A stretch of DNA of 63,531 nt, counting the filler, from Octopus bimaculoides (lineage: Eukaryota): NCBI RefSeq assembly GCF_001194135.2. It is 6 parts of 5 records of this genome, joined end to end, with 100 filler letters (N's around TTAATTAATTAA, not from the genome) between each part and the next. Parts side by side here need not be neighbours in the genome. Positions count along the whole stretch, not along the records: positions 25,553 to 47,312 come from NC_069010.1; 5 more parts are not named here. One strand, given 5' to 3'. The translations under genes were made by a program, and so were the position numbers. Positions 25,590 to 47,312 of the stretch are shown here, one piece after another (within the stretch, counting starts at the first letter, position 1; each line of letters starts with the position of its first letter). The notes below the pieces were generated by a model, which had not been told where the DNA came from, did not search any database, and saw nothing but the letters and a program-made list of their open reading frames with translations.

Positions 25590-26000
25590 ATATATATGGC
25601 ACCATGATGGATTCTTTTTATATGGTACCAGCACAGATGCTTTTTGCATGGTACTATCATGGTGCTTTTTATGTGTTCAGGACAAGTGTTTTATGTGGTA
25701 CCAACACAGTTGCTTTTCATGTGGTACCAGCACACTTGCTTTTCATGTGGTACCAGCACAAGTGCTTTTCATGCGGTGCCAGCACAGGTCCTTTTTATGT
25801 GGTGCCAGCACTCTTACTTTTCATGTGGTACCAGCACAAGTGCTTTTCATGCGGTGCCAGCATGGATGCTTTTTATGTGGTACCATTGTGGATGCTTTTT
25901 ATGTGGTACCATCATGGATGCTTTTTACATGATACCAGCTTGGTGCCCTTTTATATGGCACCTGCACAGGTGCCTTCTACATGACACCAGCACAATAACA
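25590..26000. repeat. ~21-22-bp minisatellite (TGCTTTTCATGTGGTACCAGCAC-like)
   Basis: Many visible imperfect tandem units. Confidence 0.9.
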
Positions 26001-26156: not shown

Positions 26157-27678
26157 GTAAGTTAATACTTCATCGTTCTAATGTATCTTTGTATGTTCCC
26201 TAATCTTGTCATGTATTCTGGGCTGTTGTTGTTGTTTGATCCCAGGCTATCCCTGATCCCAGTGGTTAGGGGAGCGGACTCACGGTCATAGGATCGCGGT
26301 TTCGATTCCCAGACCGGGCGTTGTGAGTGTTTATTGAGCGAAAACACCTAAAGCTCCACGAGGCTCCGGCAGGGGATGGTGGCGGAACCCTGCTGTACTC
26401 TTTCACCACAACTTTCTCTCACTCTTATTTCCTGTTTCTGTTGTGCCTGTAATTCAAAGGGTCAGCCTTGTCACACTGTGTCACGCTGAATCTCCCCGAG
26501 AACTACGTTAAGGGTACACGTGTCTGTGGAGTGCTCAGCCACTTGCATGTTAATTTAATGAGCAGGTTGTTCTGTTGATCAGATCAACTGGAAGAGGATG
26601 TGACAAGACTGACCCTTTTTTTTTTTTTNNNNNNNNNNNNNNNNNNNNNNNNNNNNNNNNNNNNNNNNNNNNNNNNNNNNNNNNNNNNNNNNNNNNNNNN
26701 NNNNNNNNNNNNNNNNNNNNNNNNNNNNNNNNNNNNNNNNNNNNNNNNNNNNNNNNNNNNNNNNNNNNNNNNNNNNNNNNNNNNNNNNNNNNNNNNNNNN
26801 NNNNNNNNNNNNNNNNNNNNNNNNNNNNNNNNNNNNNNNNNNNNNNNNNNNNNNNNNNNNNNNNNNNNNNNNNNNNNNNNNNNNNNNNNNNNNNNNNNNN
26901 NNNNNNNNNNNNNNNNNNNNNNNNNNNNNNNNNNNNNNNNNNNNNNNNNNNNNNNNNNNNNNNNNNNNNNNNNNNNNNNNNNNNNNNNNNNNNNNNNNNN
27001 NNNNNNNNNNNNNNNNNNNNNNNNNNNNNNNNNNNNNNNNNNNNNNNNNNNNNNNNNNNNNNNNNNNNNNNNNNNNNNNNNNNNNTTTTTTTTTTTTTTT
27101 TTTTTTTTTCCAGGGTCTAGGTAAAACGTCCAGTGTAGAGACCCAGAATAAAATTAAGTTTGAAATGTTGACACAAGGCCAGCAATTTCAATGCAGGGTG
27201 GGGAGTTGATTGTTTCACCACCCCCGGTACCCGAAGGGACAAGTTGACCTCGGAATAATTTGAACATAATGATGCGTTGATGAAAGACATGGCTCTTGGC
27301 TCTTCCTAATTTATCATTCCAATGATATTCTGTTCATTACAGATATGGTAATCCCTGGCTGGGTGATAGCTGTGACCACCATGCAGGTTGGAGAGCTGTC
27401 GCGGTTTCTAATCAGCCCCGAGTATGGATTTGGTGACTTTGGTTGTCCACCTAGGATCCCCAAAGCCATCACAGGTCAGTATTTCCATTTATTGAATTTT
27501 ACCATTTTGGTGCCATCAATCATGTGATAGAATACTGATTTTCATTGAGTCAATCACTGGTCGATGGCAATTGTTGATGTTGCATGACTTCCGGTTATGG
27601 AAGTCCTGGGGCCGATTTGTTCGACTAAAGGCGGTGCTCCAGCATGGCTGCAGTCAAAAGGACTGAAACGAATAAAAG

Positions 27679-27713
<35 letters not shown>

Positions 27714-30700
27714 ATTTGAGTGTATGTATATCTCAAAGCTGTGAGATAATGCATTTATCTCACATTCATTAATTCGTTAATTAAGTCACGTTCATTAATT
27801 CAAAAGAATGTGAACAAATGAAACCTTCAATTTGACAAAGAAATCTGGGAGGGTTAACCACCATCCATCAAGATTGACTGCTATTTCTAGCATCGGATCT
27901 TTTTTAAAACGGGGGCCACATTTTTCATTAATGTTTTATGTAGTGTTTTTGGTACGGAAAGACTTTCAAACTTCGTATACTTATCTATTTTGTGTTATAG
28001 AACAGAAATATATTTTTGTATTCGAATTTATTTCATGTAAAAAATTGTCTTATTTCGATAATTTCAACCAATCACTGACAAGTATTCAGTTGTTTACATT
28101 TACTCCTTTGGCTGATTAAGCCATAGCTTCGTTTTATTTGCTTTTTTCATTTTCTTTTTTTTTTCTTCGTTTTATTTGCTTTTTTCGTTTTAAATTTGCT
28201 GTTTTACCCTAACCCTAACCCTATCACCGATAGAATTGTTTCAGAATCGTTTGTTTATGTAGTCAGCACTTAATGTATATCGGCTGAATGGACGTCAGTG
28301 ATTGGTTGAAATTACAGAAATACGACAACTTTAACATGGAATAACTTGGGGATTTCTTTTTTTTTTTTTAAGAAGACTAAGAGAAAAAGATGTTTTATAT
28401 GACACATTCTACCAGTGTGCCAAGTTTCAAAGTGTTTCGTTAATGAAAAATGTGGCCAGGTTTTAAAAAAGATCCCTAGCATCTCCCGTCTCCCTCCACA
28501 GGATCTCAAATATTCCTTTCTTCCTTTCTCTCTTTCAGCTCTCTTTGAGATTGAACTTTTGTCCTTTGTCGAAGACGCTGGCATTGAAGATTATTTTCAA
28601 ATGACTGAAGTAAATATATCTTCTCTTTCTCCTTTTCATTTTTTTTCTTCTTTTCATTTCTTCTCTTCCATTCTTCTTCTCTTTCTATTCATTCTGCAGT
28701 TTCATTAATTTCTATTCATCCTTTGTTTTTTGTCTAGTTTTTTTTTGTTCACTTTTTAATTTTTCCCATTTTTCCTGTTCCAGGAAGAGAAAAGCCAGAT
28801 TCCATTCGACCAAATCCTAAAGATTGCAAATATGGAGAAATCGGTAAATAAACCTCATAGTTATACACACATGTACACTCAATTACATACATTCATATAG
28901 TGTCTGTCACTTACGTGTTTCACTCATTGGACTGTGGCCATGCTGGGGCACCATCTTGAATGAATCAACCTCTGTACTAATTTTTCTTATAAACCTGGTC
29001 CTTATTCCACCAGTCTCTTTTTGCCAAACTGCTAATCACCCCAACACTGATTGTCTAGCGGTAGTAGGGGGGGACAAACATTGACACAAAGACACCAACA
29101 TGCATAAACACACATACACAACAGGTCGCCAAGTAACTTGCTGAAGATCCCTCAACTGGGAGGAGTAGTATTGATGCACAGAAAAGTATCGTGTATCATA
29201 TACTCTTTTACTTGTTTCAATCATTTTTGACTGCGGCCATGCTGGAGCACCGCCTTTATAGTCGAGCAAATCGACCCCAGGACTTATTCTTTGTAAGTCT
29301 AGTACTTATTCAATCGGCCTCTTTTTGCCGAACTGCTAAGTTGCGGGGACGTAAACACACCAGCATCGGTTGTCAAGCGATGGTTGGGGGACAAACACAG
29401 ACACACACACACACATATATATATATACACATACATACGACGGGCTTCTTTCAGTTTCCGTCTACCAAATCCACTCACAAGGTTTTGGTCGGCCCGAGGC
29501 TGTAGTAGAAGACACTTGCCCAAGGTGCCACGCAGTGGGACTGAACCCGGAACCATGTGGTTGGTAAGCAAGCTACTTACCAAGGATTAATTTCTAAGAA
29601 ATTAAACCCATTAGATTTCAACCGGAAGTATTTATCATTGTTACCAGGAGCTGGTGTGCCAATCGTTGTAAAGTCGATCGGTCATGAGTAGACGACGACC
29701 TGTAATTAACGATATTAATAATAAGGATTATCATGAAGTTGCTTAGCATTACCTTTAATTCTTTTAATATGTACACAGCTTTACATAGACCAACACGTGT
29801 TCAATTGCACCGATTAGTAACCATTGCAATTGCAACCCTACTTTAAAACCGGTGCAGTTTCTTTAGGGTCTTTATTTGATATCCTTTTATTTGGCTTTTT
29901 AAAGATTTTCTTTTAATCTACTCTGCGTTGCATAATGTAGGGCTGTCCGTTAAGTTAGACACGAAAAATCTCCATTTCTGTTTCTTTTTCTTTACAGTTT
30001 GGTACAGAATTCTTCAGTGCCAAGAAAATTCGAAAGTCTTACAACAAATACCGTTTGGTAAGTGCTGTTATGTTGTTGTTGTGACGTTGTGAAATGGCCA
30101 TCTTTTGGTGTTGGGAGGCAACTGTCTTGTGATTGTGGTGTTGTGAGGTGATTATGTTGTGGTTGCGGCATTGTGAGGTGGCCATGTTTTGGTGTTGTTA
30201 GGCAGATGTCTTGAGGTGTTGGGATGCAACTGTCTTGCGATTGTGGTGTTGTGAGGTCGTTGTCTGCTTGTTATCGTGTTGTGAGGTGATTATGTTGTGG
30301 TTGCGGCATTGTGAGGTGGCCATGTTTTGGTGTTGTTCGGCAGATGTCTTGAGGTGTTGGGAGGCAACTGTCTTGTGATTGTGGTGTTGTGAGGTTGTCT
30401 GCTGTTGTGGTTGTGGCGTTGTGAGGTGGCCATCTTTTGGTGTTGTTAGGCAGATGTCTTGTGATTGTGGTGTTGTGAGGTGATTATGTTGTGGTTGTGG
30501 TGTTGTGAGGTGGCCATGTTTTGGTGTTGTTAGGCAGATGTTTTGAGGTGTTGGGATGCAACTGTCTTGCGATTGTGGTGTTGTGAGGTCGTTGTCTGCT
30601 TGTTATCGTGTTGTGAGGTGATTATGTTGTGGTTGTGGCATTGTGAAGTGGCCATCTTTTGGTGTTGTTAGGCAAATGTCTTGAGGTGTTGGGAGGCAAC

Positions 30701-31820
30701 TGTCTTGTGATTGTGATGTTGTGAGGTCGTTGTCTGCTGTTGTGAAGTGATTATGTTGTGGTTGTGGCATTGTGAGGTGGCCATCTTTTGGTGGTGTTCG
30801 GCAGATGTCTTGAGGTGTTGGGAGGCAACTGTCTTGTGATTGTGATGTTGTGAGGTCGTTGTCTGCTGTTGTGAAGTGATTATGTTGTGGTTGTGGCATT
30901 GTGAGGTGGCCATCTTTTGGTGGTGTTAGGCAGATGTCTCTTGGTGTTGGGAAGCAACTGTCTTGTGATGGTGGTGTTGTGAGGTCATTGTCTGCTTGTT
31001 ATCGTGTTGTGAGGTGATTATGTTGTGGTTGTGGCATTGTGAGGTGGCCATCTTTTGGTGGTGTTAGGCAGATGTCTCTTGGTGTTGGGAAGCAACTGTC
31101 TTGCGATTATGGTGTTGTGAGGTCGTTGTCTGCTTGTTATCGTGTTGTGAGGTGATTATGTTGTGGTTGTGGCATTGTGAGGTGGCCATCTTTTGGTGTT
31201 AGGCAGATGCCTTATGGTGTTGGGAAGCAACTGTCTTGTGATTGTGGTGTTGTGAGGTCGTCTGCTGTTGTGGTTGTGGCGTTGTGAGATGGCCATCTTT
31301 TGGTGTTGTTAGGCAGATGTCTTGTGATTGTGGTGTTGTGAGGTCGTTGTCTGCTGTTGTGAGGTGATTATGTTGTGGTGTTGTGAGGTGGCCATGTTTT
31401 GGTGTTGTTAGGCAGATGTTTTGAGGTGTTGGGAGGCAACTGTCTTGTGACTGTGGTGTTGTGAGGTCGTTGTCTGCTTGTTATCATGTTGTGAGGTGGT
31501 TCTGTTGTCTCTCCTAACTAATCCTTCCTTCTGCTGTTCCCATTGCAGGCCCTTCTGGTGCTTGACGAGTATGTGCCGTGCAACAGCGAAGAGGAACGTC
31601 AGATCCAAGAGTTACGCCTCTTGGTTCTCCTAAACATGGCCCTCTGCTGTCTCCGTCTCAACAATGCTCCCAAAGCCATCACATATTGCCAGAAAGCTCT
31701 GGCGATTGACAAGAACAACGCTAAGGCGTTTTACAGATTGGGACAGGTAAGTGGGTGTATATACGTGTGTGTATATAAGGACAGGTTGGTTAGGGTATGT
31801 GTATGTTAGGATAGATAAGG

Positions 31821-32194: not shown

Positions 32195-35100
32195 GTTAAA
32201 AAAAAAACAATAGGAAGGGCATCCAGCTGTAGAAACTCTGCCAAATTAGATTGGAGCCTGGTGTTGTCATCCGGTTTCACCAGTCCTCAGTCAAGTCGTC
32301 CAACCCATGCTAGCATGGAAAGCGGACGTTAAACGATGATGATGATGATGATGATATATATATGGACATGTATGTGTATACAGATGTATTTGTGTGTGTC
32401 TGTATTAACCTAATTTATAAACTAATGAATGTGTGTTTTGAGATTTAGCTACTATGTCTAGAAGGCTGTCTGTTTGTCTCCTTTTGCAGGCATACCAGAT
32501 GTTGGGCAAGTACAACGAGGCAGTCACCAACCTAAAGCTGGCTCAGAAGCTGCGACCAACAGATCCGAACGTTTCACAACAACTACAGAAACTGCACAGG
32601 TGAGTTAGGAGGGACCAGGGTTGGCACAAATGGGCTGAGGTAGGGCGGACTATACTCGAGGATTTACGGTAACATTTGACAGTAATCTGAATGCTAAGGG
32701 GTTAATAGTGTATCTAATGTATCCTTCCTTGTTTAGCCCCAGGTCAGTCCTGATCCAGTAGACCTATGATTGAAGATGTTCCAGCTGTGATTGTCCTGTC
32801 TTTTATTCAGGCATAGTGTATCTAGGACTACATTATCTAATGTGTCCTTCTTTATTGCTGTTTAGCCCTAGGTCAGTCCTGATCCTGACTGACCTATGAT
32901 CAAAGATGTTCCAGCTGTGACCGTCCTGTCTTTTATTCAGACATAGTGTATCTAGGACTACATTATCTAATGTGTTCTTCTTTATTGCTGTTTAGCCCTA
33001 GGTTAGTCCTGATCCTGACTGACCTATGATCAAAGATGTTCCAGCTGTGACCGTCCTGTCTTTTATTCAGGCATAGTGTATCTTGGACTACATTATCTAA
33101 TGTGTCCTTCCTTGTTGTTTTGCCCCAAGTCAGGTCTGATCCAGACAGACCTATGATCAGTGACGTTCCAGCTGTGACCATCCTGTCTTTTATTCAGGCA
33201 TTGTGTATCTAGGACTACATTATCTAATGTGTCCTTCCTTGTTGTTTTGCCCCAAGTCAGGTCTGATCCAGACAAATCTATGATCAGTGATGTTCCGTCT
33301 GTGACCACCCTGTCTTTCATTCAGGCATAGTGTATCTAGGACTACATTATCTAATGTGTTCTTCGGTATTTTCGAGTACTGTTAGATAGAGAATGTGACC
33401 ATCCAGGCAGAATTGTTTTATGCCTGCCAACAGGTGATATTCTAGTCCAGGGGTTTTCAAACTTTTTGACTTGCGGACCCCTTTATATTTCAGGCTTTAC
33501 CTTAGGGATCCCCTTATAAACACTTATGAAATTTATACATAAATATTTGCTTAAAATAACATATATTTTTACATTTATTTATTTAACAGTATTTAACAAA
33601 TTAACAAATAGGTTTATTGTCAATTAAAAGATTTCGATTAAAAGACATATAAAATCAAATTGCCCGNNNNNNNNNNNNNNNNNNNNNNNNNNNNNNNNNN
33701 NNNNNNNNNNNNNNNNNNNNNNNNNNNNNNNNNNNNNNNNNNNNNNNNNNNNNNNNNNNNNNNNNNNNNNNNNNNNNNNNNNNNNNNNNNNNNNNNNNNN
33801 NNNNNNNNNNNNNNNNNNNNNNNNNNNNNNNNNNNNNNNNNNNNNNNNNNNNNNNNNNNNNNNNNNNNNNNNNNNNNNNATTCTAGTCCAGGGGTTTTCA
33901 AACTTTTTGACTTGCGGACCCCTTTATATTTCAGGCTTTACCTTAGGGATCCCCTTATAAACACTTATGAAATTTATACATAAATATTTGCTTAAAATAA
34001 CATATATTTTTACATTTATTTATTTAACAGTATTTAACAAATTAACAAATAGGTTTATTGTCAATTAAAAGATTTCGATTAAAAGACATATAAAATCAAA
34101 TTGCCCGTAAAAAGTATTTGCTGTCTACGGACCCCCTGTCTTGTCCTTGTGGTCCCCGGACCACAGTTTGAAAAGCCCTCTTCTAGTCATGTGTTTTTGA
34201 GTACCGTTCATTGGCTAACAGAATCGATGCTCTGCTACAGCCTGTGTAGCAGCCGTGACATTGCTCCTCTCAAAATCACCTCGTTTGTGACGCGGTTCTG
34301 CTTGTCGACCCTCAAGGTCTTTCTGAGGCACCTCAGAAGAGCAGGGCCACCCGTACCTATCGGTAAAAACTACATACCCTCACGCTCACTCACTATGTCT
34401 TTCTCTCTCTTTCTTTCTCTCTTCCCTCAGCGATGTCCTCCAATACAAACAAGACGAGAAAGCCATGTACAAGAAAATGTTTTGCCAAACCACAAAGAAA
34501 TCGCAGTTGTCTTTATGTAAGTATTTCTGGATCTTCCCATTGTTGTTCTTGTTCTTTGTGCAGTTTGATGTTTAAACCCTAGGTCAGTCTTAGACCACCA
34601 AACCTGTAAGCAGTTGATCCAACATGTAAGCAGTAAGCAGTTGATCAAACAAAATGCAGTTCACAGATCTATCGTTTCATACATAATAGGAACCTAACTG
34701 TCTACACACCACACACAAACACACACATGCACATATATCATGGTTCTGGGTTCAGTCCCACAGTGGGGCACCTTGTGCAAGTGTCTTCTACTATGGCCGC
34801 AAGAGGACCAGACCCTTGTCAGTGGATTCAATAAGATGGTAACTATATGAAGCCCATCTTATATACTCTTTTGTTCTTTTACTTGTTTCACTCATTTGAC
34901 TGCGGCCATACTGGAGCACTGCTTTGAAGGGTTTTAGTTGAACAAATCAGTTACATTTTTGAAGCCTAGTACTTACTCTATTGGTCTCTTTTGCTGAACT
35001 GCCAAGTTACGGGGACGTAAACACACCAACATTGGTTACCAAGCTATGTTGGGGTAACACACACACTTATATATATTCTTATATGTTATATATTCTTTTA

Positions 35101-35306
35101 TTTGTTTCAATCATTTGACTGCGGCCATGCTGGAGCACCGCTTTTAGTCGTGTAAATCGACCCCAGGACTTATTCTTTGTAAGCCTTGTACTTATTCTAT
35201 CAGTCTCTCTTGCCAAACTGCTAGCTGACAGGGACGTAAACACACCAGCATCGGTTGTCAAGCGATGTTGGGGGACAAACACAGACACAAACATATACAT
35301 ACATAC

Positions 35307-38140: not shown

Positions 38141-38418
38141 CAGGGTGTCTACAAGGTCTGGGTACATGGAGTAAATTAAATATAAGAAATAATAATTTCT
38201 TAAAGTATGTGTTAATCCCCATGTGGCTACATGGAGTAAATAAAATCATAACATAAGCAATTAAATATAAGAAATAATAATTTCTTAAAGTATGTGTTAA
38301 ATCCCCATGTGGGTACATGGAGTAAATAAAATCATAGCATAAACAATCAAATATAAGAAATAATGATTTCTTAAAGTATGTGTTAATCCTCATGTACCCA
38401 GAGTTTGAGGACACCCTG
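38141..38418. mobile_element. Tc1/mariner-type MITE with internal ~70-bp tandem repeats
   Basis: TIRs CAGGGTGTCT..GGGTACATG / CATGTACCCAG..GACACCCTG with TA flanks. Confidence 0.8.
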
Positions 38419-40329
38419 TATATTCACATACATACTCACATATAATGTATGTATGTGTGTGAATATGTATATATATGTATGTATTTTTGTGTATGTCTGT
38501 GTATTAATATATGTATGTATATACATACACACACATAAATATATATACACACACATACATATAAATACACACATAAAGATCTTTTACTCATTCCATCTAT
38601 TTTATTAAGACTGTTATATATATATGTATGTATGTATATATATATATGTATGTATGTATATATATATGTATGTATATATATATATTATTTTTTAATTTTT
38701 ATTTGATTTTTTTTTTTNNNNNNNNNNNNNNNNNNNNNNNNNNNNNNNNNNNNNNNNNNNNNNNNNNNNNNNNNNNNNNNNNNNNNNNNNNNNNNNNNNN
38801 NNNNNNNNNNNNNNNNNNNNNNNNNNNNNNNNNNNNNNNNNNNNNNNNNNNNNNNNNNNNNNNNNNNNNNNNNNNNNNNNNNNNNNNNNNNNNNNNNNNN
38901 NNNNNNNNNNNNNNNNNNNNNNNNNNNNNNNNNNNNNNNNNNNNNNNNNNNNNNNNNNNNNNNNNNNNNNNNNNNNNNNNNNNNNNNNNNNNNNNNNNNN
39001 NNNNNNNNNNNNNNNNNNNNNNNNNNNNNNNNNNNNNNNNNNNNNNNNNNNNNNNNNNNNNNNNNNNNNNNNNNNNNNNNNNNNNNNNNNNNNNNNNNNN
39101 NNNNNNNNNNNNNNNNNNNNNNNNNNNNNNNNNNNNNNNNNNNNNNNNNNNNNNNNNNNNNNNNNNNNNNNNNNNNNNNNNNNNNNNNNNNNNNNNNNNN
39201 NNNNNNNNNNNNNNNNNNNNNNNNNNNNNNNNNNNNNNNNNNNNNNNNNNNNNNNNNNNNNNNNNNNNNNNNNNNNNNNNNNNNNNNNNNNNNNNNNNNN
39301 NNNNNNNNNNNNATATATATATATGCATCTGTGTGTATATGTATGTATATATATATATATATATATGGAGGACAGTCTGTATATATGTATGTATGTATCT
39401 ATATATATATGAATGTATGTATATATATTTTATATGCATGTGTATATATATATATATATATGCATGTAAGTATCTATATATATATATATTATACATATAC
39501 ACACACAAACCTATATATATGCACATACTCACAGAGACTCATACAGGAACATAAGTGGTTGAAACCATGTAACACAAGGTCTTTTGGTGTGATGCTCCAC
39601 CGATTCTGCCAACTGCTCTCTTAGAAACTTCATTATTTTCCCAAATATATCTTTTCCCATTCTTTCCCTTCCTTAGTGTCTCTCTGACACACATACACAC
39701 ACACACACATATATTTGTATGTATACTTTCACATATATACGCATGTATGTTTATATAGCTTAATGGTACAGACCACTCAGCTGGAATTTTGAGAAGTAGA
39801 GGATTTAATCTGCCAAAAATATCTTCCCTATCTCCTAAACTGTTTCCATAGCTATTCTGCTTATGAAACTTGACTTAATTTTTTCTAAAATTCCAAATTA
39901 CTTGATGCTCCGAAGTGTGTCTGTAAATATATTTATATATATATAATGTTATACTCTTCCAAGATGTTGTGATAGTGACTGGGCACACAATACTATAATA
40001 GTAAAGGAAACAAGTGTTTTCATTGGTTGGTTGGGCGAGAGGTGACTGGACTCTGGGCTTGTCCTCTCATATCTCTCCCCCAACCATAGAAGTCCTTAAA
40101 ACGGTGCAATAAAAGCCTGTTATTTCATTAGAAAAGAAAAAGAAAAAGCAAAGATTTCACAAGACATCTTTAATCATCATCATCATCATCGTTTAATGTC
40201 CGCTTTCCATGCTAGCATNNNNNNNNNNNNNNNNNNNNNNNNNNNNNNNNNNNNNNNNNNNNNNNNNNNNNNNNNNNNNNNNNNNNNNNNNNNNNNNNNN
40301 NNNNNNNNNNNNNNNNNNCATTCATGTCA

Positions 40330-40667
40330 GGATTACATGCAAAATTTAAAGAGTGATTAATCATGCGGGAAGATTATTCAAACTTCATTGATAAGGAACA
40401 AGAGGGGCCGGATCTGGTTCATCAGCATCAGATTCCTGTACTTCTTTGCATTTCAGCCATTGTTTCTTTATGGCCGGTCGCTGTCGGTCTTCGTCATTGG
40501 TGTTTAACTTTGATGAAGATATTGGTACCTTCCAGAATACATTTCAACCTCTCCGACATTGTTTGTGGTAAACCACATTTCTTCGGTGTATATTAGACGC
40601 TCATCTACACAGCTACCGAAGGTAAAATTGTCGCTGGCTTGACATTGCATTCTGCCCGACGTTATTT
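40330..40667 (-). pseudogene. NS1 helicase fragment (copy 4, B/B' region only)
   Basis: GRMQCQASDNFTFGSCVDERLIYTEEMWFTTNNVGE, then frameshifted KCILEGTNIFIKVKHQ; homologous to copies 1 and 2. Confidence 0.8.
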
Positions 40668-40960
40668 GAAAATATATGAACACCTTGCAAGTTTTTTCTG
40701 AATACAATTTTCCTGGGACTCTTCAGGGGTTGTAGCTTAGTGTTTTGCCTCAACTTCCAATAATGTCTATCTGTTCCTCCTCATGATAAAATGCATCTCT
40801 TTCTAAAGCCAGATGTAAACAATTCTTGCCTTCTGCATCAACAGCACCTTTTGAAAATATAATATGAACACCTTGCAAGTTTTTTCTGAATACAATTTTC
40901 CTGGGACTCTTCAGGGGTCGTAGCTTAGTGTTTTGCCTCATCTTCCAAGCTTGAAATAAA
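40668..40960 (-). pseudogene. Decayed ankyrin-repeat gene fragment, with an ~85-bp direct duplication (40668-40750 / 40852-40940)
   Basis: NLQGVHIIFSKGAVDAEGKNCLHLALERD matches the ankyrin pattern L..GA...D..G..xLHLA. Confidence 0.7.
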
Positions 40961-41072
40961 GGCAGGGTCATCTGGTCCTTCAGGGGAACTGTTGTCTAGG
41001 TCAGTAGGTAGCTTCCTTTTTTGGGTTTCACTTTCTCTGAGATTGAAATAACATCATCCTACTGTGTGCCCT

Positions 41073-41079
41073 CACAAAA

Positions 41080-41110
<31 letters not shown>

Positions 41111-41191
41111 CTTCCGCGCTGATCCGTCCAAGCCCGTTCCCTTGGCTGTGGTTTTGCTAGACAGTGGGAATCTCATTGATCCATTCATGCA

Positions 41192-41223
<32 letters not shown>
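41073..41223 (-). pseudogene. 28S rRNA: 28S rDNA fragment starting exactly at the R2 insertion site
   Basis: The reverse complement reads TAGCCAAATGCCTCGTCATCTAATTAGTGACGTGCATGAATGGATCAATGAGATTCCCACTGT..GCCAAGGGAACGGGCTTGG..GAAGACCCTGTTGAGCTTGACTCTAGT, i.e. conserved 28S sequence with substitutions and an ~13-nt deletion. Confidence 0.95.
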
Positions 41224-42300
41224 GTCCAACTTGCTTTCGCTATCTTTCCTTGTTAATTTAACATGGGCGGTCCCACTGCGCTCGCCAAATAGTGACCTGG
41301 ATCAAGCACTATCATAAGCCGAGGGTAAGGCCCCAACAGCGCACGAGGCCGACAGGGGGTTCGAATTGAAGGGCGACTGACTGGACGAAACCGACAGGCC
41401 CCCTACGCCTGTCATTGGACACTCTTTCGGGCATGGTCTCTGTTGGGGCCAAGCTTCCGGATGCTACGTGGGACGGGTCTAGTCAGCGCCTGTACCCCGC
41501 CCTGCGATGGAGCTGCAGGGAAACGGGGTCTCGATACACGCACAACAAGCGAGGGACTTGAGGAGTGTCCAACGATTGCCGCAAGATGGAAAAGCGACTA
41601 CGACTACAAATCGACCGGCGAAACTGAGAAATACCGACCCAGCAACCGAGAAACTCAGACACGGACATAGCGGGACCGTGCGACTGTATATCGTCGCTAC
41701 ACGATCCTGACGAAACCTCGAACCAAAAGCGACCGGCACCGAATACTACGAAACCCAGCCGAATCACTAAACACCAAGAGCCGGAGGGTGCCTTCGCATG
41801 CCCTGTCCTGATATGAGGTCCCCGAGCGAACCCTGAGAGACCGTAGTCAGAACCTGCCGGATGGAACTGGCAGTAAACTCTAGAAACGACGTCGACGCCC
41901 AGGTAGGAGGGGATTATCGCCCACACTCCCACTGTAATCGAACGTTGGGACACGCCCCTTGATCCACCCTCATGGATCAGTCCCTAAGCATGCTGTACGT
42001 GCAGAGCATTGCTGTCCTGCTCAGCAACTTCATTAANNNNNNNNNNGTAGTCAGAACCTGCCGGATGGAACTGGCAGTAAACTCTAGAAACGACGTCGAC
42101 GCCCAGGTAGGAGGGGATTATCGCCCACACTCCCACTGTAATCGAACGTTGGGACACGCCCCTTGATCCACCCTCATGGATCAGTCCCTAAGCATGCTGT
42201 ACGTGCAGAGCATTGCTGTCCTGCTCAGCAACTTCATTAACGACTTGTCCCTAATGCACAGAGCTTTCAATGCCCTCTCGGCCTCGCGGCTCCAGGCACA
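41224..42300 (-). mobile_element. 5'-truncated R2 retrotransposon: C-terminus of the ORF plus 3' UTR
   Basis: 42181-42300 translates AWSREAERALKALCIRDKSLMKLLSRTAMLCTYSMLRD*, resembling the end of an R2 restriction-like endonuclease domain. A GC-rich UTR follows and ends precisely at 28S TAGCC, replacing the normal upstream TTAAGG. Confidence 0.8.
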
Positions 42301-42625
42301 AATATTTAAAAATCCACTTATCTGACATAAGTATGGATTCCTTCTTATAATGAAACAAATCTTTTTTTATAGCAAGGTGCAAACAACTATTGCTACCTCT
42401 GGATGAAAAAGGGCTCAACCTTAATCCTAACCCTCTCTCACAGCAGAAATTTCAAAATCCACTTATCTGACATAAGTATGTATTCCTTCCCATAATGAAA
42501 CCAATCTTTCTTTACAGCAAGATGTAAACAACTATTGCTACCTCTGTCAACAGCGCCTTTTTGAAATAAAATGTGGACCCCCTCCAAGCAGACGCTTGGA
42601 CCCAGCATGGGTTTTCTCAACACAA
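42301..42625 (-). pseudogene. Decayed ankyrin-repeat fragments (~140-bp unit)
   Basis: EGVHILFQKGAVDRGSNSCLHLAVKKDWF plus a partial second unit. Confidence 0.7.
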
Positions 42626-42629
42626 TAAA

Positions 42630-43110
42630 AAATATAAAGACGCTATTGTTTGATCTGTATCTTAAATTTACCTGTTGTATATGCATAACTTGGTATATTG
42701 TAGAACGTTCTTTTCATTTCTCTATTTCTTTTTTAGGAAGACAATTCTCTCTCATGTTTGGTTCTTCATATAAACATAGTTTGATGTTGACCATGTCTTG
42801 AAAAGGAAAAGATGATCCCCCTTGTGTTGTTCATGTGAATCTGAAAAGTTTATCAATTGATTTTGCATTGTATGATTTACCCCTGTTGGGTGTACCTTCC
42901 ATTATAAATGTATTTCTTTTTGGTATATTTTGATGTAAGTTGTTCTATAGTTCTTGGACAAATTGTTGAGTATCAATGGATTGGATATCCATAATTCTCT
43001 CGAATATTTTGAATGATAAGTCTAGATTATGACAGTCATTGGTTTTGTAAGATTTGCAAAATTCATCATTTCAGGATAATTTTGAAATCCGAGAGATATT
43101 GAGGAGGTTT
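42630..43110 (-). pseudogene. Endogenous parvovirus-like NS1 helicase fragment of a second, divergent lineage (copy 3)
   Basis: Hand translation IPKRNTFIMEGTPNRGKSYNAKSIDKLFRFT*TTQGGSSFPFQDMVNIKLCLYEEP; Walker A 42873-42896, Walker B LYEEP; in-frame stops hide it from the ORF track. Confidence 0.8.
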
Positions 43111-43123
43111 GTTAAGAACTCTC

Positions 43124-43900
43124 TTACGCAGTTCGCTTAAAGTATCTTTTCTTAGAATTACCAACAATTGAGACTTGGCAAGCAATGTTTGTCACTTGAA
43201 TTTTTGTGTAGTTTTGCCATATTGTTAACCAAATTAATGGGTTCAGTTCTTTTTGTCCCCATTCTTTTAGTTGTGGCATTGGTCTATGCGTTTTGTATAG
43301 GAACATTCTTGCTTTTTATGGCTTCTTCTTCTTGTGAACATCTGTCCCAAGGGAATGAGTTTCCGGTGCTTAAACAGGGTGTGCGCTTCATTATTCTTTC
43401 TGCCTGGTGTTTTTATGTTTATGTAGGTATCTGTACCTTCTAGGATGCATTTTGCCTCCTCGATATTGGTGTTGACGAACTACATTTCGTCAGTAAAAAT
43501 TAAAGTTTTGTCGATACAAGTACCGAATGTGAAATTATCGGATGCTTGGCATCGCATCCTACCGCAGTTCAGGAACGTAAGATGTAGCGCTTTCCCGAAT
43601 TGGGTGCTCCGTGAATGTGGAGAGAATTTTTCTTGGGTAGAATTTTGTGACATACGTCGAATATGTCTTTGGTGAATGCTTGCGAATCGATGTGGAGGAA
43701 GGATGTCCAGCTTTCATAAATTCCTAGAGAGGTAGTGACATTCCAGTAGGATACACGTTCGTGTACAAAGGTAACAAAAAGTCCACAGACGCAGAAATTT
43801 TCGGCCCAGTAGGGCGAAAATTGCTGTAAAAAAACAGACAACAGTTCGAATCCAAGTAGAATACACAACCACAAAATAACGATAGACGAACAAAAACGAA
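43124..43900 (-). pseudogene. Endogenous parvovirus/densovirus-like NS1 SF3 helicase fragment (copy 2, most complete)
   Basis: PKKNSLHIHGAPNSGKR (43587-43610), frameshift, then NCGRMRCQASDNFTFGTCIDKTLIFTDEM*..EEAKCILEG..INIKHQAERIMKRTPCLSTGNSFPW..AIKARMF: motifs A, B, B', C and Arg finger in order. Confidence 0.88.
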
Positions 43901-43949
43901 CTCACTCAACAATAGCAGGTAGCAGAGAAAATTCTCGATACACAGCTGA

Positions 43950-44630
43950 AAAAAGGCTCAACCCTAACCCTCTCTCACAACAGAAATTTCAAAATCCACT
44001 TATCTGACATAAGTATGGATTCCTTCTCATAATGAAACAAATCTTTCTTTACAGCAAGGTGTAAACAACTATTGCCACCTTGAATTTTTATGTAGTTTTG
44101 CCATATTGTTAACCACATTAATGGGTTCAGTTCTTTTTGTCCCCATTCTTTTAGTTGTGGCATTGGTCTATGCGTTTTGTATAGGAGCATTCTTGCTTTT
44201 ATGGCTTCTTCTTTTTTTATAGCAAGGTGTAAACAACTATTGCTACCTCTCGATGAAAAAAGGCTCAACCCTAACCCTAACCCTCTCTCACAGCAGAAAT
44301 TTCAAAATCCACTTATCTGACATAAGTATGGATTCCTTCCCATAGTGAAACAAATCCTTCTTTACAGCAAGGTGTAAACAATTATTGCTACCTCTGGATG
44401 AAAAAAGGCTCAACCCTCACCCTAACCCTCTCTCACAGCAGAGATTTCAAAATCCACTTATCTGACATAAGTATGGATTCCTTCCCATAATGAAACAAAT
44501 CTTTCTTTACAGCAAGGTGTAAACAATTATTGCCACCTCTGTCAACAGCACCTTTTGAAATAAAATGTGGACCCCCCTCCAAGGGGACTCTTGGACCCAG
44601 CATGGATTTTCTCAACACAATAGATTTTAT
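43950..44630 (-). repeat. Tandem ~140-145-bp ankyrin-fragment units with an embedded NS1 piece
   Basis: The unit AGGCTCAACCCTAACCCTCTCTCACAGCAGAAATTTCAAAATCCACTTATCTGACATAAG..ACAGCAAGGTGTAAACAACTATTG recurs at ~43954, ~44261 and ~44406; the minus strand reads G.N.CLHLAVKKDLF. Confidence 0.8.
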
Positions 44631-44889
44631 CACAATTGAAGATGTTCCTCAAACTTTTTGTGTTGTCCCGTTTGGAACATATTTCCATTGTCCCTGAATT
44701 CCCTATTTTTCACCAGTTCAAAGAGGTTATCCCCAAACTTGGTCTACAGTTTTGAGTTTTGGGATCTTTTTTTTTTCTTCCGTTTTTGAAGCTCTGTGAC
44801 ATATTCAACTTAAAATGTCTTCTGCTGCTTTCACCTACAATTGAGACACGACCAAGCAATGTCTGTCTGTTTGTCTCAGTCTCCCTTTT

Positions 44890-45436
44890 ATTCCGACAAT
44901 GTCTAACTTCATCTCATCCAACATGTCCATGAGTTCATTCTCACGACGAAAGGAATCTATCTTCAAAGCAAGAGGGAGACATTTATGGCCTTTCCCATCA
45001 ACAGCACCTTTGGAAAATGTCAATCCTTCAAAGGTGGCCCCTAGATACAGCAAGGAGCAGTGTTTCCATATCACCACAGTTCTGTCTCCATGTATTTTAC
45101 AGACCCTGGGACATTCTCACTACAATAGATTTTATCAGAATTGAAAATGTTCCTTCTCTTCTTGTGTTGTTCCTGTTAGAACATCTGACCATTTCTATGA
45201 AGAGTGTTAATATCTGCCTCTTCAGCTGTTAACATGTGAATCTTCCCAAGGTGACCCCTGGAGATGGCTTAACCAACTCCTCGTGCAACACGGTAGCTGT
45301 CCCGAGTGTTGCTCTCAGCAGCCACTTCCGTTGAAGAGATGATCCTCTTCATGAAGACACATTGCTTCTCCAGCTGGGCACTCAGACACCCGAACTCTGC
45401 CTTCCTGTTGTTGTAAGGTTGGGTACTTTCAGCCAT
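44890..45436 (-). pseudogene. Decayed ankyrin-repeat host gene exon beginning at a splice acceptor + ATG
   Basis: TTTTTCTGTGTTATTTCAG|ATGGCTGAA at ~45436; downstream frames read AEEADINTL, KSIV and FSKGAVDGKGHKCLPLA..DMLDE; frameshifted. Confidence 0.5.
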
Positions 45437-45779
45437 CTGAAATAACACAGAAAAAATATTTATAACCATGTCAATTGAAGTAGAAGTGAAAAATAACTTA
45501 TCGTACAGTGATACTATACCACAGTATCGGACAAAAGGACGATTTCCTCTTTCTCTCTAACTCTATTAGAATTCTTCTCCAAAGTTCCGTGTATTCAGTC
45601 CCAGTATTATGAAAGTAGGACGCTGTTCTGGCTGGGGAGAAGACAGCTGCTGATTGACTCTGTTAAATTTGCCGTCGGTTCAAAAAACCCCATATCTCGC
45701 GGGCTGCACCTAACGCAAATCTGAACAAGCTGCTGCAGGCTGCATTTGGCATTTAGCAAGCGAATCAGCGATGTAGTTG

Positions 45780-46440
45780 AATAAGATTGAATACCAGAGA
45801 AATGGCCAGTCACTTCTTTAAGTAGAGGCATTGGTTGAATTGGTTGAATCGTTTTGAATATAAACATTCTGGCTCAAATTGCTGCCTTTTCCTGTGGACA
45901 TCTATCCGATGGTGTTTTAGAATTCTTTCGTATTGGAGTTTTGTTTTGCCCTATATTTCTGTACTTTCCCGTATGCATTTACCTTCTTCAATATTAGTGT
46001 TGATGAACCATATTTCGTCAGTGAATATCAAGGTTTTGTCAATGCATGTTCCGAAAGTAAAGTTGTCGTTTGCTTGACAACGCATTCGTCCACAGTTCAT
46101 TAAGTCGTTTCTTATTGATCGTAAAATGTAGCCTTTTCCAGAATTTGGAACTCCATGTATATGTAGTGAGTTTCTTTTCGGAAGAATTTTCTGGCAGACA
46201 TCGAAGAGATTTTTAGCAGATGTTACGTGATTAATATGGTGGTACATTGTCCACTTTTCGTAAATCCCTAAGGATGTTTTGACATCCCAGAAGGTGTTAG
46301 ATGCTTCTTCAAAGAACATTTTTTTATCTTGAATTTTGGTCGCATATTGGAGTCATGCGGTTCTCAATCTGTAGTTGTGTGGCTGCAGGTAGTAGCCAGG
46401 AATTTAAGTTTGGTGTATTTCAGTATATGGACATCCATGT
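45780..46440 (-). pseudogene. Endogenous parvovirus/densovirus-like NS1 SF3 helicase fragment (copy 1)
   Basis: PKRNSLHIHGVPNSGKGYIL (Walker A 46131-46154), LIFTDE (Walker B), EEGKCI (B'), AAI*ARMF (Arg-finger region); stops and deletions present. Confidence 0.85.
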
Positions 46441-46444
46441 GTCG

Positions 46445-47312
46445 TAGTACATATTTTTTCCGACAGTTAATACGAAGTGTGTTATATCTCCTAAGCCTGT
46501 AGAGTTATATTACAAAAATCCTTACCTTTGTCGTAGGGAACTGAGGTAGCCAGTATAGACCATTCCAAGGAGAATTGTTTATTGCAATTTTTCAGTTCCC
46601 AAATAAATTTACTTAGGCCGGTGCTGTTAGCTTTATTCCTATCCCTAAATGAAGAATAATGGTTCGATATTCTCTTGGAGACCTGCGTCGATGAGCTACC
46701 TACCTAAAACGAGACATCTGCGTAAGACATTACCTTACATTGATAAACCACATTCTTGGTCTTGGCATTTGCACTTAAAAACTTAATTCTATTAGGATTT
46801 GATTCCGAGATGCTAATCTTATTATTGTTACAGATATTGTTATGATTCCTAATATTGTACGTACTACCTATATTAATACCTAAATGACTATTGCCATCAT
46901 ATGAGTGTGTTAAATTACTGGAGTAATTATTATAGTTATTGATATAAACATTACTATTATCATCATAACTGGGATGGCTGTCTAGAGATGAATCTAAAAG
47001 CCTGAAGTTATGGGAAGATATAATCTGTAACAAATTTTTAGTATTCGAAAACCCAAATCTAACCTTATGTGAGTTGATTATTGGGTAATAGTAGGAACCC
47101 CTAGGAAAGTTCCTACTCACCGCGTCTTGGAACTGCCGGACCAAATTTGATTTAACTTGCTTCCCAAATGGGAGGATGAGCCAGATATTATCATCAAATC
47201 TAGTTACAGTATTAGTGTGGTTGAATAGATGAAGATTTTTGTTTTTGTTAAAGTGTTTAGAGCCAGTTGGGCCTCCTCTCTTATGTGAGTGATAAGCATG
47301 ATCCACTTTCTC
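46445..47312 (-). mobile_element. Penelope-like element (Naiad-like), RT C-terminus + GIY-YIG endonuclease, decayed
   Basis: IWLILPFGKQVKSNL..FP..YYPIINSHKVRFGFSNTKNLLQIISSHN matches the PLE post-RT motif. Then NVVYQCKV..F*VGSSSTQVSKRISNHYSSFRDRNKANSTGLSKFIWELK..EWSILATSVPYDKGKDFCN is the GIY-YIG, with TAG in place of the Y of YVG. Confidence 0.85.

Follow-up and report, generated by a model that had tools for sequence, protein, structure and literature searches.

A one-strand cluster of decayed parvovirus NS1 fragments, ankyrin-like repeats and a ribosomal DNA junction in Octopus bimaculoides

How did pieces of parvovirus, ribosomal DNA and repeats come to lie side by side, in a single sense, within 7 kb of the Octopus bimaculoides genome? 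The block in question occupies positions 40319-47312 of the window, i.e. the whole 63,531-nucleotide stretch of DNA that was analysed, and comprises, on the minus strand, scraps of parvovirus NS1, ankyrin-like (AL) repeat units, an R2/28S junction and a nuclease-like scrap. The best explanation, which we hold to be probable with some reserve, is a non-coding, decaying EVE (endogenous viral element) cluster that arose at the DNA level from a small number of captures together with local direct duplication and template switching.

Anatomy and assembly of the block

The pieces and the gaps that bear on them are the following.

40219-40318, no strand: 100-N scaffold gap, between the block and the remainder of the piece
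40390-40686, minus: NS1-E, mid-helicase to C-terminal part (tblastn)
40665-40960, minus: divergent AL unit within a 188-bp partial tandem duplication (repeat family)
about 41075-41223, minus: fragment of a 28S rRNA gene, ~150 bp (Rfam LSU_rRNA_eukarya)
41224-42295, minus: putative R2-like 3' end, ending exactly at 28S R2-site +1
42037-42046, no strand: 10-N gap at an unmerged contig overlap
42296-42715, minus: AL long unit and one short unit, abutting the R2-like tail (self-comparison)
42700-43130, minus: NS1-D, piece of an SF3 helicase from another parvovirus lineage (Pfam, tblastn)
43148-43790, minus: NS1-C, helicase region through C-terminus (tblastn)
43947-44700, minus: AL array, one long unit and 145-bp tandem units (TRF period 145, repeat families, dissection)
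44063-44216, minus: NS1-B, duplicate of the NS1-C C-terminal end (repeat families, self-comparison)
44782-45201, minus: divergent long AL unit, then tail segment 44782-44867 (alignment of AL units)
45202-45799, no strand: spacer X1, unassigned, no recognisable feature on either strand
45800-46506, minus: NS1-A, SF3 helicase region of parvovirus NS1 (Pfam, tblastn, tblastx to Logan homologues)
46497-47312, minus: GIY-YIG-like ORF fragment (Pfam GIY-YIG below cutoff)

The minus-strand order of pieces drawn in the first-pass annotation stands, piece names aside. ORFs on both strands of spacer X1 gave no Pfam match, and the spacer holds no internal repeat. The single polarity, the tight packing and a repeat landscape unlike that of the neighbour are real features of this anatomy. 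The absence of microsatellites and SINEs, already remarked on in the first pass, is confirmed by counts: the block has no microsatellite locus compared with 22 in the adjoining 13.4 kb, a density at which 11.5 would be expected for the block (Poisson P ~1e-5, an overstated value as microsatellites cluster), and no SINE-like copy compared with 4.

The block is made up of two small contigs of 1.7 kb and 5.3 kb. The 194 bp closing the left contig (41843-42036) are 100% identical to the 194 bp opening the right one (42047-42240) and therefore represent an unmerged overlap, not a real repeat, so that the sequence is continuous after dropping one copy and the apparent 204-bp tandem is an artefact. 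The gap at 33667-33879, with identical 228-bp flanks, reveals the same habit of the assembler. Only the R2-like tail crosses the 10-N gap, which makes it about 204 bp shorter than earlier drawn; the NS1 pieces are untouched. No sequence is common to the two sides of the 100-N gap (40219-40318), and the link of the block to the rest of the scaffold is thus unproven, as had been cautioned from the start.

Considering these gaps, the block might be a chimeric, misplaced or collapsed contig, in which short-read contigs were joined at repeated AL or NS1 sequence. The two small contigs, the overlaps left unmerged at two gaps, the lack of overlap between block and scaffold, the repeat landscape unlike that of the neighbour and the internal repeats of 92-98% identity, which invite mis-joins, all point in this direction, and the context of a gap-bounded short contig with a differing repeat landscape also counts against the EVE-cluster explanation. 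Nevertheless, most junctions between unlike pieces (GIY-like/NS1-A, NS1-C/tail/NS1-D, NS1-D/AL and AL/R2-like) lie in unique sequence of one gap-free 5.3-kb contig, the sole internal join is backed by the 194-bp overlap, and the divergence of 25-35% among NS1-A, NS1-C, NS1-E and the old AL units is too large for assembler confusion. An assembly error is, on this evidence, unlikely, and we infer that the locus is host germline DNA.

Parvovirus NS1 fragments of at least two lineages

Five NS1 pieces were found on the minus strand, which bears out the four copies and the insert in the ankyrin tandem reported earlier. With a cutoff of 20 bits, Pfam Parvo_NS1 recognised NS1-A (40.3 bits, E = 2.3e-10) and NS1-D (27.7 bits); NS1-D also matched PPV_E1_C above cutoff, with 28.5 bits. 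The NS1-family profile matched the AAV Rep40/68 helicase (E = 2e-11). In a tblastn search with 165 NS1 proteins, 545 of the 545 matches fell on the minus strand of the block, with none on the plus strand and none outside the block.

Every long NS1 piece carries stops and/or frame changes. NS1-A is devoid of the nuclease domain and has an internal deletion; its reading frame changes at least twice and meets at least 2 stops, and it holds an intact 122-aa ORF (45951-46319). NS1-C, after which comes a tail segment (43107-43193), changes frame at least 3 times and meets at least 1 in-frame stop; NS1-D has 3 in-frame stops, and NS1-E changes frame at least once, with at least 1 in-frame stop. NS1-B is free of both and is in frame with the AL unit (97-aa ORF, 43975-44268). 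No piece of the block is able to encode a working protein.

NS1-A and NS1-C are 68-74% identical in nucleotide sequence and form sister copies with a bootstrap of 1.0 against six outside Logan loci, the informative sites splitting 24 versus 11 and 7. NS1-E falls outside this pair, a clade A+C+E receiving only 16% support in the neighbour-joining tree. The best tblastn matches of NS1-D are the full-length NS1 proteins P0031 and P0032 (34-39% identity, E ~1e-13), compared with E = 1e-4 against the A/C/E family, which places NS1-D closer to other parvovirus NS1 proteins of full length than to that family. Sequence comparison thus points to at least two parvovirus lineages within 7 kb, A/C and D, with NS1-E probably a third, and this diversity fits a capture-prone locus.

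NS1-B is 93-98% identical to the end of NS1-C and is set into an AL unit, each junction showing approximately 4-6 nt of microhomology; no other event has a readable donor. The six outside contigs that carry the same NS1 family have nothing else in common with the block and, therefore, the mosaic is not a unit travelling with NS1.

Ankyrin-like units and nuclease-like fragment

The AL units, which we take to be the matrix of the cluster, had been described as ankyrin exons. This reading is weakly supported: Pfam Ank gives 18.3 bits, below its cutoff of 21.1, and the best solved-structure match is the EHMT1 ankyrin domain (E = 0.0019). The homologue search for AL found none. Differences among AL units are spread evenly across codon positions, and this indicates neutral evolution. 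The 145-bp tandem unit combines 102 nt that stay open in the ankyrin-like frame with a 43-nt GT...AG spacer carrying TTAGGG-like repeats. NS1-B interrupts the array at 43947-44700. Among the other members, the unit at 44782-45201 is 63-78% identical to other AL units, its tail (44782-44867) is 68% identical to the tail at 43107-43193, and the segment at 42296-42715 is a 91.5% duplicate of 44294-44622. The 188-bp tandem at 40665-40960 is formed by repeats of 87-99 bp, 95-98% identical, the second of which runs into NS1-E.

At the opposite end, the GIY-YIG-like fragment is cut by the edge of the piece and contains one in-frame stop and an N-rich low-complexity insert. Its Pfam GIY-YIG match is below threshold (E = 0.036-0.054), the 200-aa ORF within it (46704-47306) has no Pfam match, no NCBIfam match and no homologue, and the AlphaFold model of a 69-aa part of the GIY-YIG-like ORF is unusable (pLDDT 59.9). 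As Pfam and ORF scans detected no RT-coding sequence anywhere in the block, the original assignment to a PLE RT/GIY-YIG is not upheld.

R2-like tail and 28S fragment

The 28S fragment called in the first pass is genuine and lies on the minus strand: scanned alone it matches LSU_rRNA_eukarya with 137.5 bits (E = 2.6e-35, model positions ~2280-2445), and within the whole block with 38.8 bits. It runs from R2-site +1 onward, with a 13-nt internal deletion, and opens with 15 bases equal to +1 to +15 of the R2 insertion site (Eickbush's primer), its start coinciding with the R2 bottom-strand nick. The adjoining tail has a GC content of 55% and, once the gap and the spurious second copy are subtracted, a true length of approximately 865 bp. 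Domain searches detected neither RT nor endonuclease in it, Rfam detected no R2 element, and the short ORF remnant at its end matches none of the solved R2 proteins. Of the earlier reading as an R2 3' end, the junction exactly at the R2 site is retained, and the name R2-like comes from the position of this junction.

R2 elements insert in 28S rRNA genes and are co-transcribed with them, and the R2 RT is able to jump to other cellular RNAs in vivo, yielding template-jump chimeras (Eickbush & Eickbush 2012, PMC3414825). As in such insertions, the non-28S sequence stops exactly where 28S R2-site +1 starts. Unlike R2, no recognisable R2 coding sequence or ribozyme is present in the block, and the 28S part is only ~150 bp long with its 13-nt deletion, has no upstream counterpart and lies amid non-rDNA sequence.

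An RT could, in principle, have made the whole mosaic: R2 or another RT would have copied an R2-28S co-transcript and jumped to AL, NS1 and other RNAs, the chimeric cDNA then being integrated. That all pieces are sense on one strand, that downstream 28S follows the R2 3' end, just as it does in the natural co-transcript, and that the R2-like tail, heavily truncated at its 5' side, directly borders an AL unit would agree with such an origin. However, the block contains no RT-coding sequence, no hammerhead ribozyme was found in it, an upstream 28S flank was not seen at the mosaic's far side, none of the piece boundaries showed a poly(A) tract, and the 28S flank is short. The AL units retain an intron-like spacer, and NS1-A, NS1-C and the AL units differ by 25-35%, which implies very different ages and not one cDNA. 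In addition, NS1-B was copied from an already decayed resident NS1-C, and a parvovirus, as a DNA virus, needs no RT for integration. The retroelement product that had been offered as an alternative, with its PLE call lost, is therefore very unlikely.

Shared polarity and direct duplication

Sensitive self-comparison of the block gave 29 direct repeats and 0 inverted ones, in agreement with the NS1 matches and with the single polarity claimed earlier. The order NS1-tail-AL is collinear in two units, with NS1-A and with NS1-C, which are similarly diverged throughout (NS1 68-74%, tail 68%, AL 63-78% identity), and further direct duplications are 92-98% identical. Since local direct duplication keeps orientation by construction, it explains much of the shared polarity, which is less striking than it appears. 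About 5 independent oriented pieces are left, with P ~0.06 (~1/16).

A cargo-carrying mobile element, i.e. a transposon with host and viral gene fragments captured in its own orientation, would give the same single orientation, and a nuclease-like ORF does lie at one end. This origin is nevertheless highly improbable: the block, whose ends are at gaps, shows neither terminal repeats nor target-site duplications, no transposase, RT or transposon-type Rep-helicase was found by Pfam or in ORFs on both strands, no inverted repeat of at least 30 nt exists within it save one weak 32-nt pair, and the six outside NS1-family contigs lack every other component.

Taking together what the pieces are, how they are oriented, ordered and related, the breaks in their genes and the microhomology at the NS1-B junctions, we infer the following history for the EVE cluster. 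The captured material would be the NS1-A/C ancestor, NS1-E and, from the other parvovirus lineage, NS1-D, together with a single R2-3'end/28S junction derived from a ribosomal DNA unit and the scrap of a GIY-YIG-like gene. An old duplication of the composite NS1-tail-AL unit would have given NS1-A and NS1-C, although their sister relation could alternatively come from two integrations of one virus. The 145-bp AL tandem, the 330-bp duplicate at 92% identity and the 188-bp tandem would have followed. The end of NS1-C would have been copied into an AL unit by microhomology-mediated template switching, giving NS1-B, which may alternatively have been copied, through RNA, from a transcript of the locus itself.

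To find material from three parvovirus acquisitions, ribosomal DNA and part of a nuclease-like gene in one sense within 7 kb exceeds what simple duplication predicts, and hints at a capture-prone or selected locus. A uni-strand trap resembling a piRNA cluster, a transcribed locus keeping invader fragments one way so that antisense small RNAs are made, is a possible though doubtful reading of the sequence. The one polarity of every oriented piece, the NS1 fragments from at least 2-3 lineages within 7 kb, the lack of the neighbour's microsatellites and SINE-like repeats, and the precedents in Aedes unidirectional EVE/TE loci and in shrimp scrambled IHHNV EVE clusters argue for it. Against it stand the small number of oriented pieces left after removing duplicates, the presence of just two TE-like pieces, one of them doubtful, and a size of 7 kb where Aedes loci reach >50 kb. 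Such a trap is compatible with the duplication history set out above.

Comparison with known systems

In Penaeus monodon, clusters of scrambled IHHNV (parvovirus) EVEs have been read as piRNA-like clusters inherited as a unit (Taengchaiyaphum et al. 2022, PMC9357335). The octopus block likewise packs several parvovirus fragments, non-functional as genes, in one locus. The shrimp fragments are ~99% identical to known IHHNV records and vary in order and reading direction between clusters (PMC9357335), whereas those of the block are ancient, 25-35% apart and with ~30-75% protein identity to database matches, all come from the NS1 helicase region of at least two lineages on one strand, and are interleaved with AL units and the rDNA/R2 piece.

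The piRNA clusters of Aedes aegypti are unidirectional loci of EVE and LTR fragments, where other repeats are "crowded out", as in the block, and which are thought to capture new invaders occasionally (Whitfield et al., bioRxiv 10.1101/127498). There, the EVEs derive from RNA viruses captured via LTR-retrotransposon reverse transcription, loci can exceed 50 kb and piRNAs were measured (bioRxiv 10.1101/127498). The block differs in its DNA virus, the lack of an LTR element, the duplicated AL matrix and its 7 kb.

Degraded parvovirus-related sequences of invertebrate genomes, including lineages outside known genera and hosts beyond arthropods, are described in the part of Francois et al. 2016 (PMC5013282) that we drew on; as in the block, the NS1 fragments treated there are stop-truncated and lie beside repeats or TEs, and that part describes no multi-lineage single-strand cluster like the present one.

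Nothing in its sequence reveals a function for the block. Should the locus have a role, supplying small RNAs would be the likeliest candidate. As a bed of viral fossils, the octopus block has known counterparts in mosquitoes and shrimp.

Layout and polarity of the block

The mosaic block at 40319-47312 consists of parvovirus NS1 fragments (NS1-A to NS1-E), ankyrin-like repeat units (AL units), a short "tail" segment present in two copies, an R2-like tail with a 28S fragment and a GIY-like open reading frame. Read from high to low coordinates, its pieces are the following.

Pieces of the block in minus-strand order
47312-46497, minus strand, GIY-like ORF: an ORF clipped by the piece edge, then one in-frame stop, then a sub-threshold GIY-YIG stretch
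46506-45800, minus strand, NS1-A, matching Pfam Parvo_NS1
45799-45202, unassigned sequence
45201-44782, minus strand, divergent AL unit and tail segment
44700-43947, minus strand, AL array of one long unit, then 145-bp tandem units, interrupted by NS1-B at 44216-44063
43790-43148, minus strand, NS1-C, followed by the second tail copy at 43193-43107
43130-42700, minus strand, NS1-D
42715-42296, minus strand, long and short AL units
42295-41224, minus strand, R2-like tail, GC-rich (55%)
41223 to about 41075, minus strand, 28S fragment
40960-40665, minus strand, AL unit within a 188-bp partial tandem duplication
40686-40390, minus strand, NS1-E

The minus-strand order reported by the first-pass annotation was recovered, as was the single polarity, the NS1 pieces, the 28S/R2 piece and the GIY-like piece all being sense on the minus strand. 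A tblastn search with 165 NS1 proteins gave 545 matches, all 545 on the minus strand of the block, with none on the plus strand and none in the remaining 14.7 kb of the piece. A sensitive self-comparison of the block showed 29 direct internal repeats and no inverted one. Mixed orientation was considered by scanning the plus-strand ORFs and was rejected, the sole match being to Baculo_p33, below threshold at 18.1 bits (cutoff 25; E = 0.0024) and most likely noise, in an ORF at 42571-42801 that overlaps an AL unit.

After collapse of the duplicates, five independent oriented pieces are left: the GIY-like ORF, the ancestor of NS1-A and NS1-C, NS1-D, NS1-E and the R2/28S piece. The probability that all five lie on one strand is 1/16 (about 0.06), or 1/32 if the AL frame is counted as a sixth. 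A polarity beyond chance is thus suggestive, not compelling.

Identity and decay of the NS1 fragments

Pfam Parvo_NS1 was matched by NS1-A with 40.3 bits and by NS1-D with 27.7 bits (cutoff 20), and the intact 122-aa ORF of NS1-A reached E = 2.3e-10 against the same family. NS1-A has ten close homologues, every one from Logan read assemblies, and their profile matches the AAV Rep40/Rep68 helicase (E = 2e-11). The NS1 profile search returned 1017 cluster representatives, of which the closest are short fragments only; full-length NS1 proteins of 500-660 aa come next (E of about 1e-34 to 1e-28), the nearest named one being a nonstructural protein of "Turdus hortulorum parvoviridae sp.". An exact-product look-up of the NS1-A ORF gave no record, and no relative was confirmed when viral contigs were scanned with the NS1 alignment.

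Only the region from the helicase to the C-terminus of NS1 is represented in the block. Comparison of the window with the 165 NS1 proteins and with six related contigs gave no match to an HUH nuclease domain, a capsid gene or other viral sequence, whereas in two of the outside loci (L001 and L002) the helicase is preceded by the nuclease part.

The reading frames are broken, the counts being minimum values. NS1-A exhibits at least two frame changes, at least two in-frame stops and an internal deletion; NS1-C at least three frame changes and at least one stop; NS1-E at least one of each; and NS1-D three in-frame stops with no frame change detected. NS1-B, of 55 codons only, has neither. The disrupted frames of NS1-A, NS1-C, NS1-D and NS1-E, together with the position of the NS1 pieces next to 28S rDNA and AL units in gap-free sequence, point to endogenous elements rather than free virus.

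NS1-D scores above the cutoffs of both Parvo_NS1 and PPV_E1_C. In tblastn it is 34-39% identical to other full-length NS1 proteins (E of about 1e-13) and matches the family of NS1-A, NS1-C and NS1-E at E = 1e-4. NS1-D is closer to the former than to the latter and comes from another parvovirus lineage.

Relationships of the NS1 copies and local duplication

Six outside loci (L001-L006), from the four Logan runs ERR12921341, ERR12370323, ERR12408770 and ERR3431203, contain the same NS1 family. These are multi-copy, frameshifted NS1 endogenous viral elements (EVEs), of which some include the upstream nuclease part, and two of the runs each contain two different loci. Within and between runs, and including those of the window, the aligned stretches of the NS1 copies show nucleotide identities of about 66-75%. 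Compared with the six outside loci, NS1-A and NS1-C are sisters, with 24 informative sites against 11 and 7 and a neighbour-joining bootstrap of 1.0. NS1-E falls outside this pair, and the clade of the three has 16% support. The NS1 sequence is the sole part that the outside contigs have in common with the block, so that the mosaic is not carried along as a unit with NS1.

Two units of the block share the order NS1, tail, AL, with identities of 68-74% for NS1, 68% for the tail and 63-78% for AL. Divergence is thus similar in all three parts, as would be expected after an old direct duplication of one composite unit. The duplicate formed by 42299-42627 and 44294-44622 (91.5% identity), the 145-bp AL tandem (91-95%) and the 188-bp partial tandem at 40665-40948 (repeats 95-98% identical) are younger than this duplication.

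NS1-B is 93-98% identical to the end of the resident, decayed NS1-C and takes the place of part of one AL unit; at each of its junctions about 4-6 nt are common to donor and recipient. These features point to a microhomology-guided copy-and-paste event inside the locus. The AL unit with NS1-B forms one open frame of 97 aa at 43975-44268 (ankyrin-like, NS1 C-terminal, ankyrin-like); the frame is kept across both junctions, and GT...AG intron-like spacers lie on either side. A frame match at both junctions has a chance probability of about 1/9, and the AL units themselves are neutral.

Ankyrin-like units

For the AL units, Pfam Ank gave 18.3 bits (cutoff 21.1), and this for the two-unit ORF only. 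When a five-unit AL profile was compared with solved structures, the best match was the EHMT1 ankyrin domain (E = 0.0019), and nine of the 12 weak matches were ankyrin-repeat proteins. A word-indexed homologue search with the AL alignment among 5.8 billion proteins gave no homologue, and no ankyrin parent gene can be named. In each 145-bp tandem unit the ankyrin-like frame is open over a segment of 102 nt, and the other 43 nt form a GT...AG spacer containing TTAGGG-like repeats. Codon positions 1, 2 and 3 contribute evenly to the differences between units, and purifying selection on the frame is not seen. Of the "ankyrin exon" proposed earlier, an ankyrin derivation is plausible and the status as a host exon putative; no sign of a working gene was seen. 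A live multi-exon gene, as the open 102-nt segments and GT...AG 43-nt spacers might suggest, was considered for the array, and a current function was rejected on the even codon-position substitutions and the lack of a homologue.

28S fragment and R2-like tail

A whole-piece Rfam scan at the gathering threshold misses the 28S fragment, but a focused scan of 40980-41260 alone recovered LSU_rRNA_eukarya with 137.5 bits (E = 2.6e-35). The first 15 nt of the match are those that PMC3414825 places at +1 to +15 beyond the R2 site, and its start coincides with the R2 bottom-strand nick set by the oligonucleotides in PMC13000458. By these positions, the boundary is an R2-type 3' junction. The fragment spans only about 150 bp and bears a 13-nt deletion (41155-41165) in which positions of about +63 to +75 relative to the R2 site are lost. 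It nearly coincides with the 14-bp interval (+61 to +74) that R1 elements duplicate on insertion (PMC3414825), and could be an R1-type footprint or due to chance.

In the ORFs of 41224-42295 no Pfam domain was found, whether of a reverse transcriptase (RT), a restriction-like endonuclease or otherwise, nor any match to solved R2 proteins, and the Rfam scan at E<=1 gave neither the R2 structured 3' UTR element nor a 5' HDV-like ribozyme. In a 5'-truncated R2 copy most coding and structural R2 features are expected to be missing, and insect sequences underlie the Rfam R2 model. The earlier "R2 3' end" is a putative label drawn from the position of the junction. A resemblance of the short terminal ORF remnant to an R2 C-terminus was also considered and is not supported, comparison with solved structures giving chance HSP82 matches only.

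GIY-like ORF

The GIY-like stretch matched Pfam GIY-YIG at E = 0.036-0.054, with 14-15 bits against a cutoff of 22.6. For the 200-aa ORF no Pfam family, no NCBIfam family and, in a word-indexed search, no homologue was found, and no Penelope-like element (PLE) can be named as its parent. The AlphaFold model of a 69-aa piece had a pLDDT of 59.9, too poor for a fold search. PLEs encode a GIY-YIG endonuclease with a CCHH motif, and canonical ones contain a hammerhead ribozyme (PMC8557442). The CCHH pattern is not readable in the GIY-like frame, the hammerhead was not found in the Rfam scan and no ORF of the block matched a reverse transcriptase. With the GIY-YIG match itself below threshold, the former assignment to a PLE RT is not supported.

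Assembly and repeat landscape

Runs of N occur in the piece 25553-47312 at 26629-27085, 33667-33879, 38718-39312, 40219-40318 and 42037-42046. The last one lies within the R2-like tail and touches none of the NS1 pieces. Its flanks, 41843-42036 and 42047-42240, are 194 bp long and 100% identical; the end of the left contig being the start of the right one, this gap is an unmerged overlap. Dropping one 194-bp copy yields continuous sequence, so that the apparent 204-bp tandem is an artefact and the R2-like tail, at about 865 bp, is some 204 bp shorter than its coordinates imply. The same unmerged-overlap artefact is seen at the 213-N gap 33667-33879, with 100% identical flanks of 228 bp (33439-33666 and 33880-34107).

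Comparison of the left and right flanks of the 100-N gap at 40219-40318 showed nothing in common, and the block is joined to the remaining piece through scaffolding alone. An assembly chimera within the block has limited scope, in that most junctions between unlike pieces sit in unique sequence in a single gap-free contig of 5.3 kb, and the sole internal join is backed by the 194-bp overlap.

The scarcity of simple repeats described previously was borne out. The block has no microsatellite locus, compared with 22 in the neighbouring 13.4 kb and 11.5 expected (Poisson P of about 1e-5, overstated since microsatellites cluster), and no copy of a SINE-like repeat that occurs four times in the neighbour. 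This contrast is a stronger signal than the single polarity, and could stem either from a distinct chromatin compartment or from misplacement of the contig.

The four SINE-like copies, at 27631-27660 (minus), 29224-29253 (plus), 34893-34922 (plus) and 35112-35141 (plus), are in both orientations; each adjoins a TA/TG/AC microsatellite, and we take the repeat to be reminiscent of cephalopod SINEs, although a literature search with a string of it gave no match. A GT-rich minisatellite of the piece, at 30068-31478, has periods near 30, 138 and 332 bp, and its GC skew is extreme (+0.47 to +0.63). There are also tandem arrays at 32730-33404 (127-130 bp x5), 25593-25994 (26 bp x14) and 38174-38395 (86 bp x2.6).

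Origin and significance of the block

The first-pass observation is largely confirmed, with corrections to the PLE, the ankyrin units and the gap; its interpretation, a strand-biased trap or a retroelement product, is partly supported. From the observed identities, strands, order, sister relation of NS1-A and NS1-C, junction microhomology of NS1-B and neutral evolution of the AL units, we infer a succession in which a few captures into an AL-repeat region, through DNA repair rather than RT, would have come first, direct duplication and microhomology-mediated template switching at the DNA level next, and neutral decay of the locus last.

Template switching by a reverse transcriptase has the one attraction that a natural R2-28S co-transcript exists and that the R2 RT jumps templates in vivo. 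Nevertheless, the block contains no RT and no upstream 28S flank, no poly(A) tract was seen at any piece boundary, the AL units retain their intron-like spacers, the ages of the pieces differ widely, and NS1-B was copied from the already decayed resident NS1-C. A candidate piRNA cluster, for which precedents exist, would be compatible with the DNA-level history. We consider improbable a reading as a single-strand "memory" locus of a non-arthropod animal, prone to capture, with repeated intake of NS1 from several lineages and a copied R2/28S transcript, putatively feeding a small-RNA pathway; the in-frame ankyrin-like/NS1/ankyrin-like ORF at 43975-44268 would add a twist to it.

The block is another EVE cluster, of a kind already known, and an added example rather than a new principle; its R2-3'end/28S junction, lying outside an rDNA unit, is of minor additional interest to studies of rDNA and R2. 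If the locus belongs to the host germline, at least two and probably three distinct parvovirus encounters are recorded in it, of lineages otherwise known only from short metagenomic or genome-survey fragments, and these fossils would have spread within the locus by direct duplication and microhomology-guided copy-and-paste. The two processes alone can mimic the single-orientation signature often taken as evidence of a piRNA cluster; surveys of EVE clusters should therefore collapse duplicates before testing orientation.
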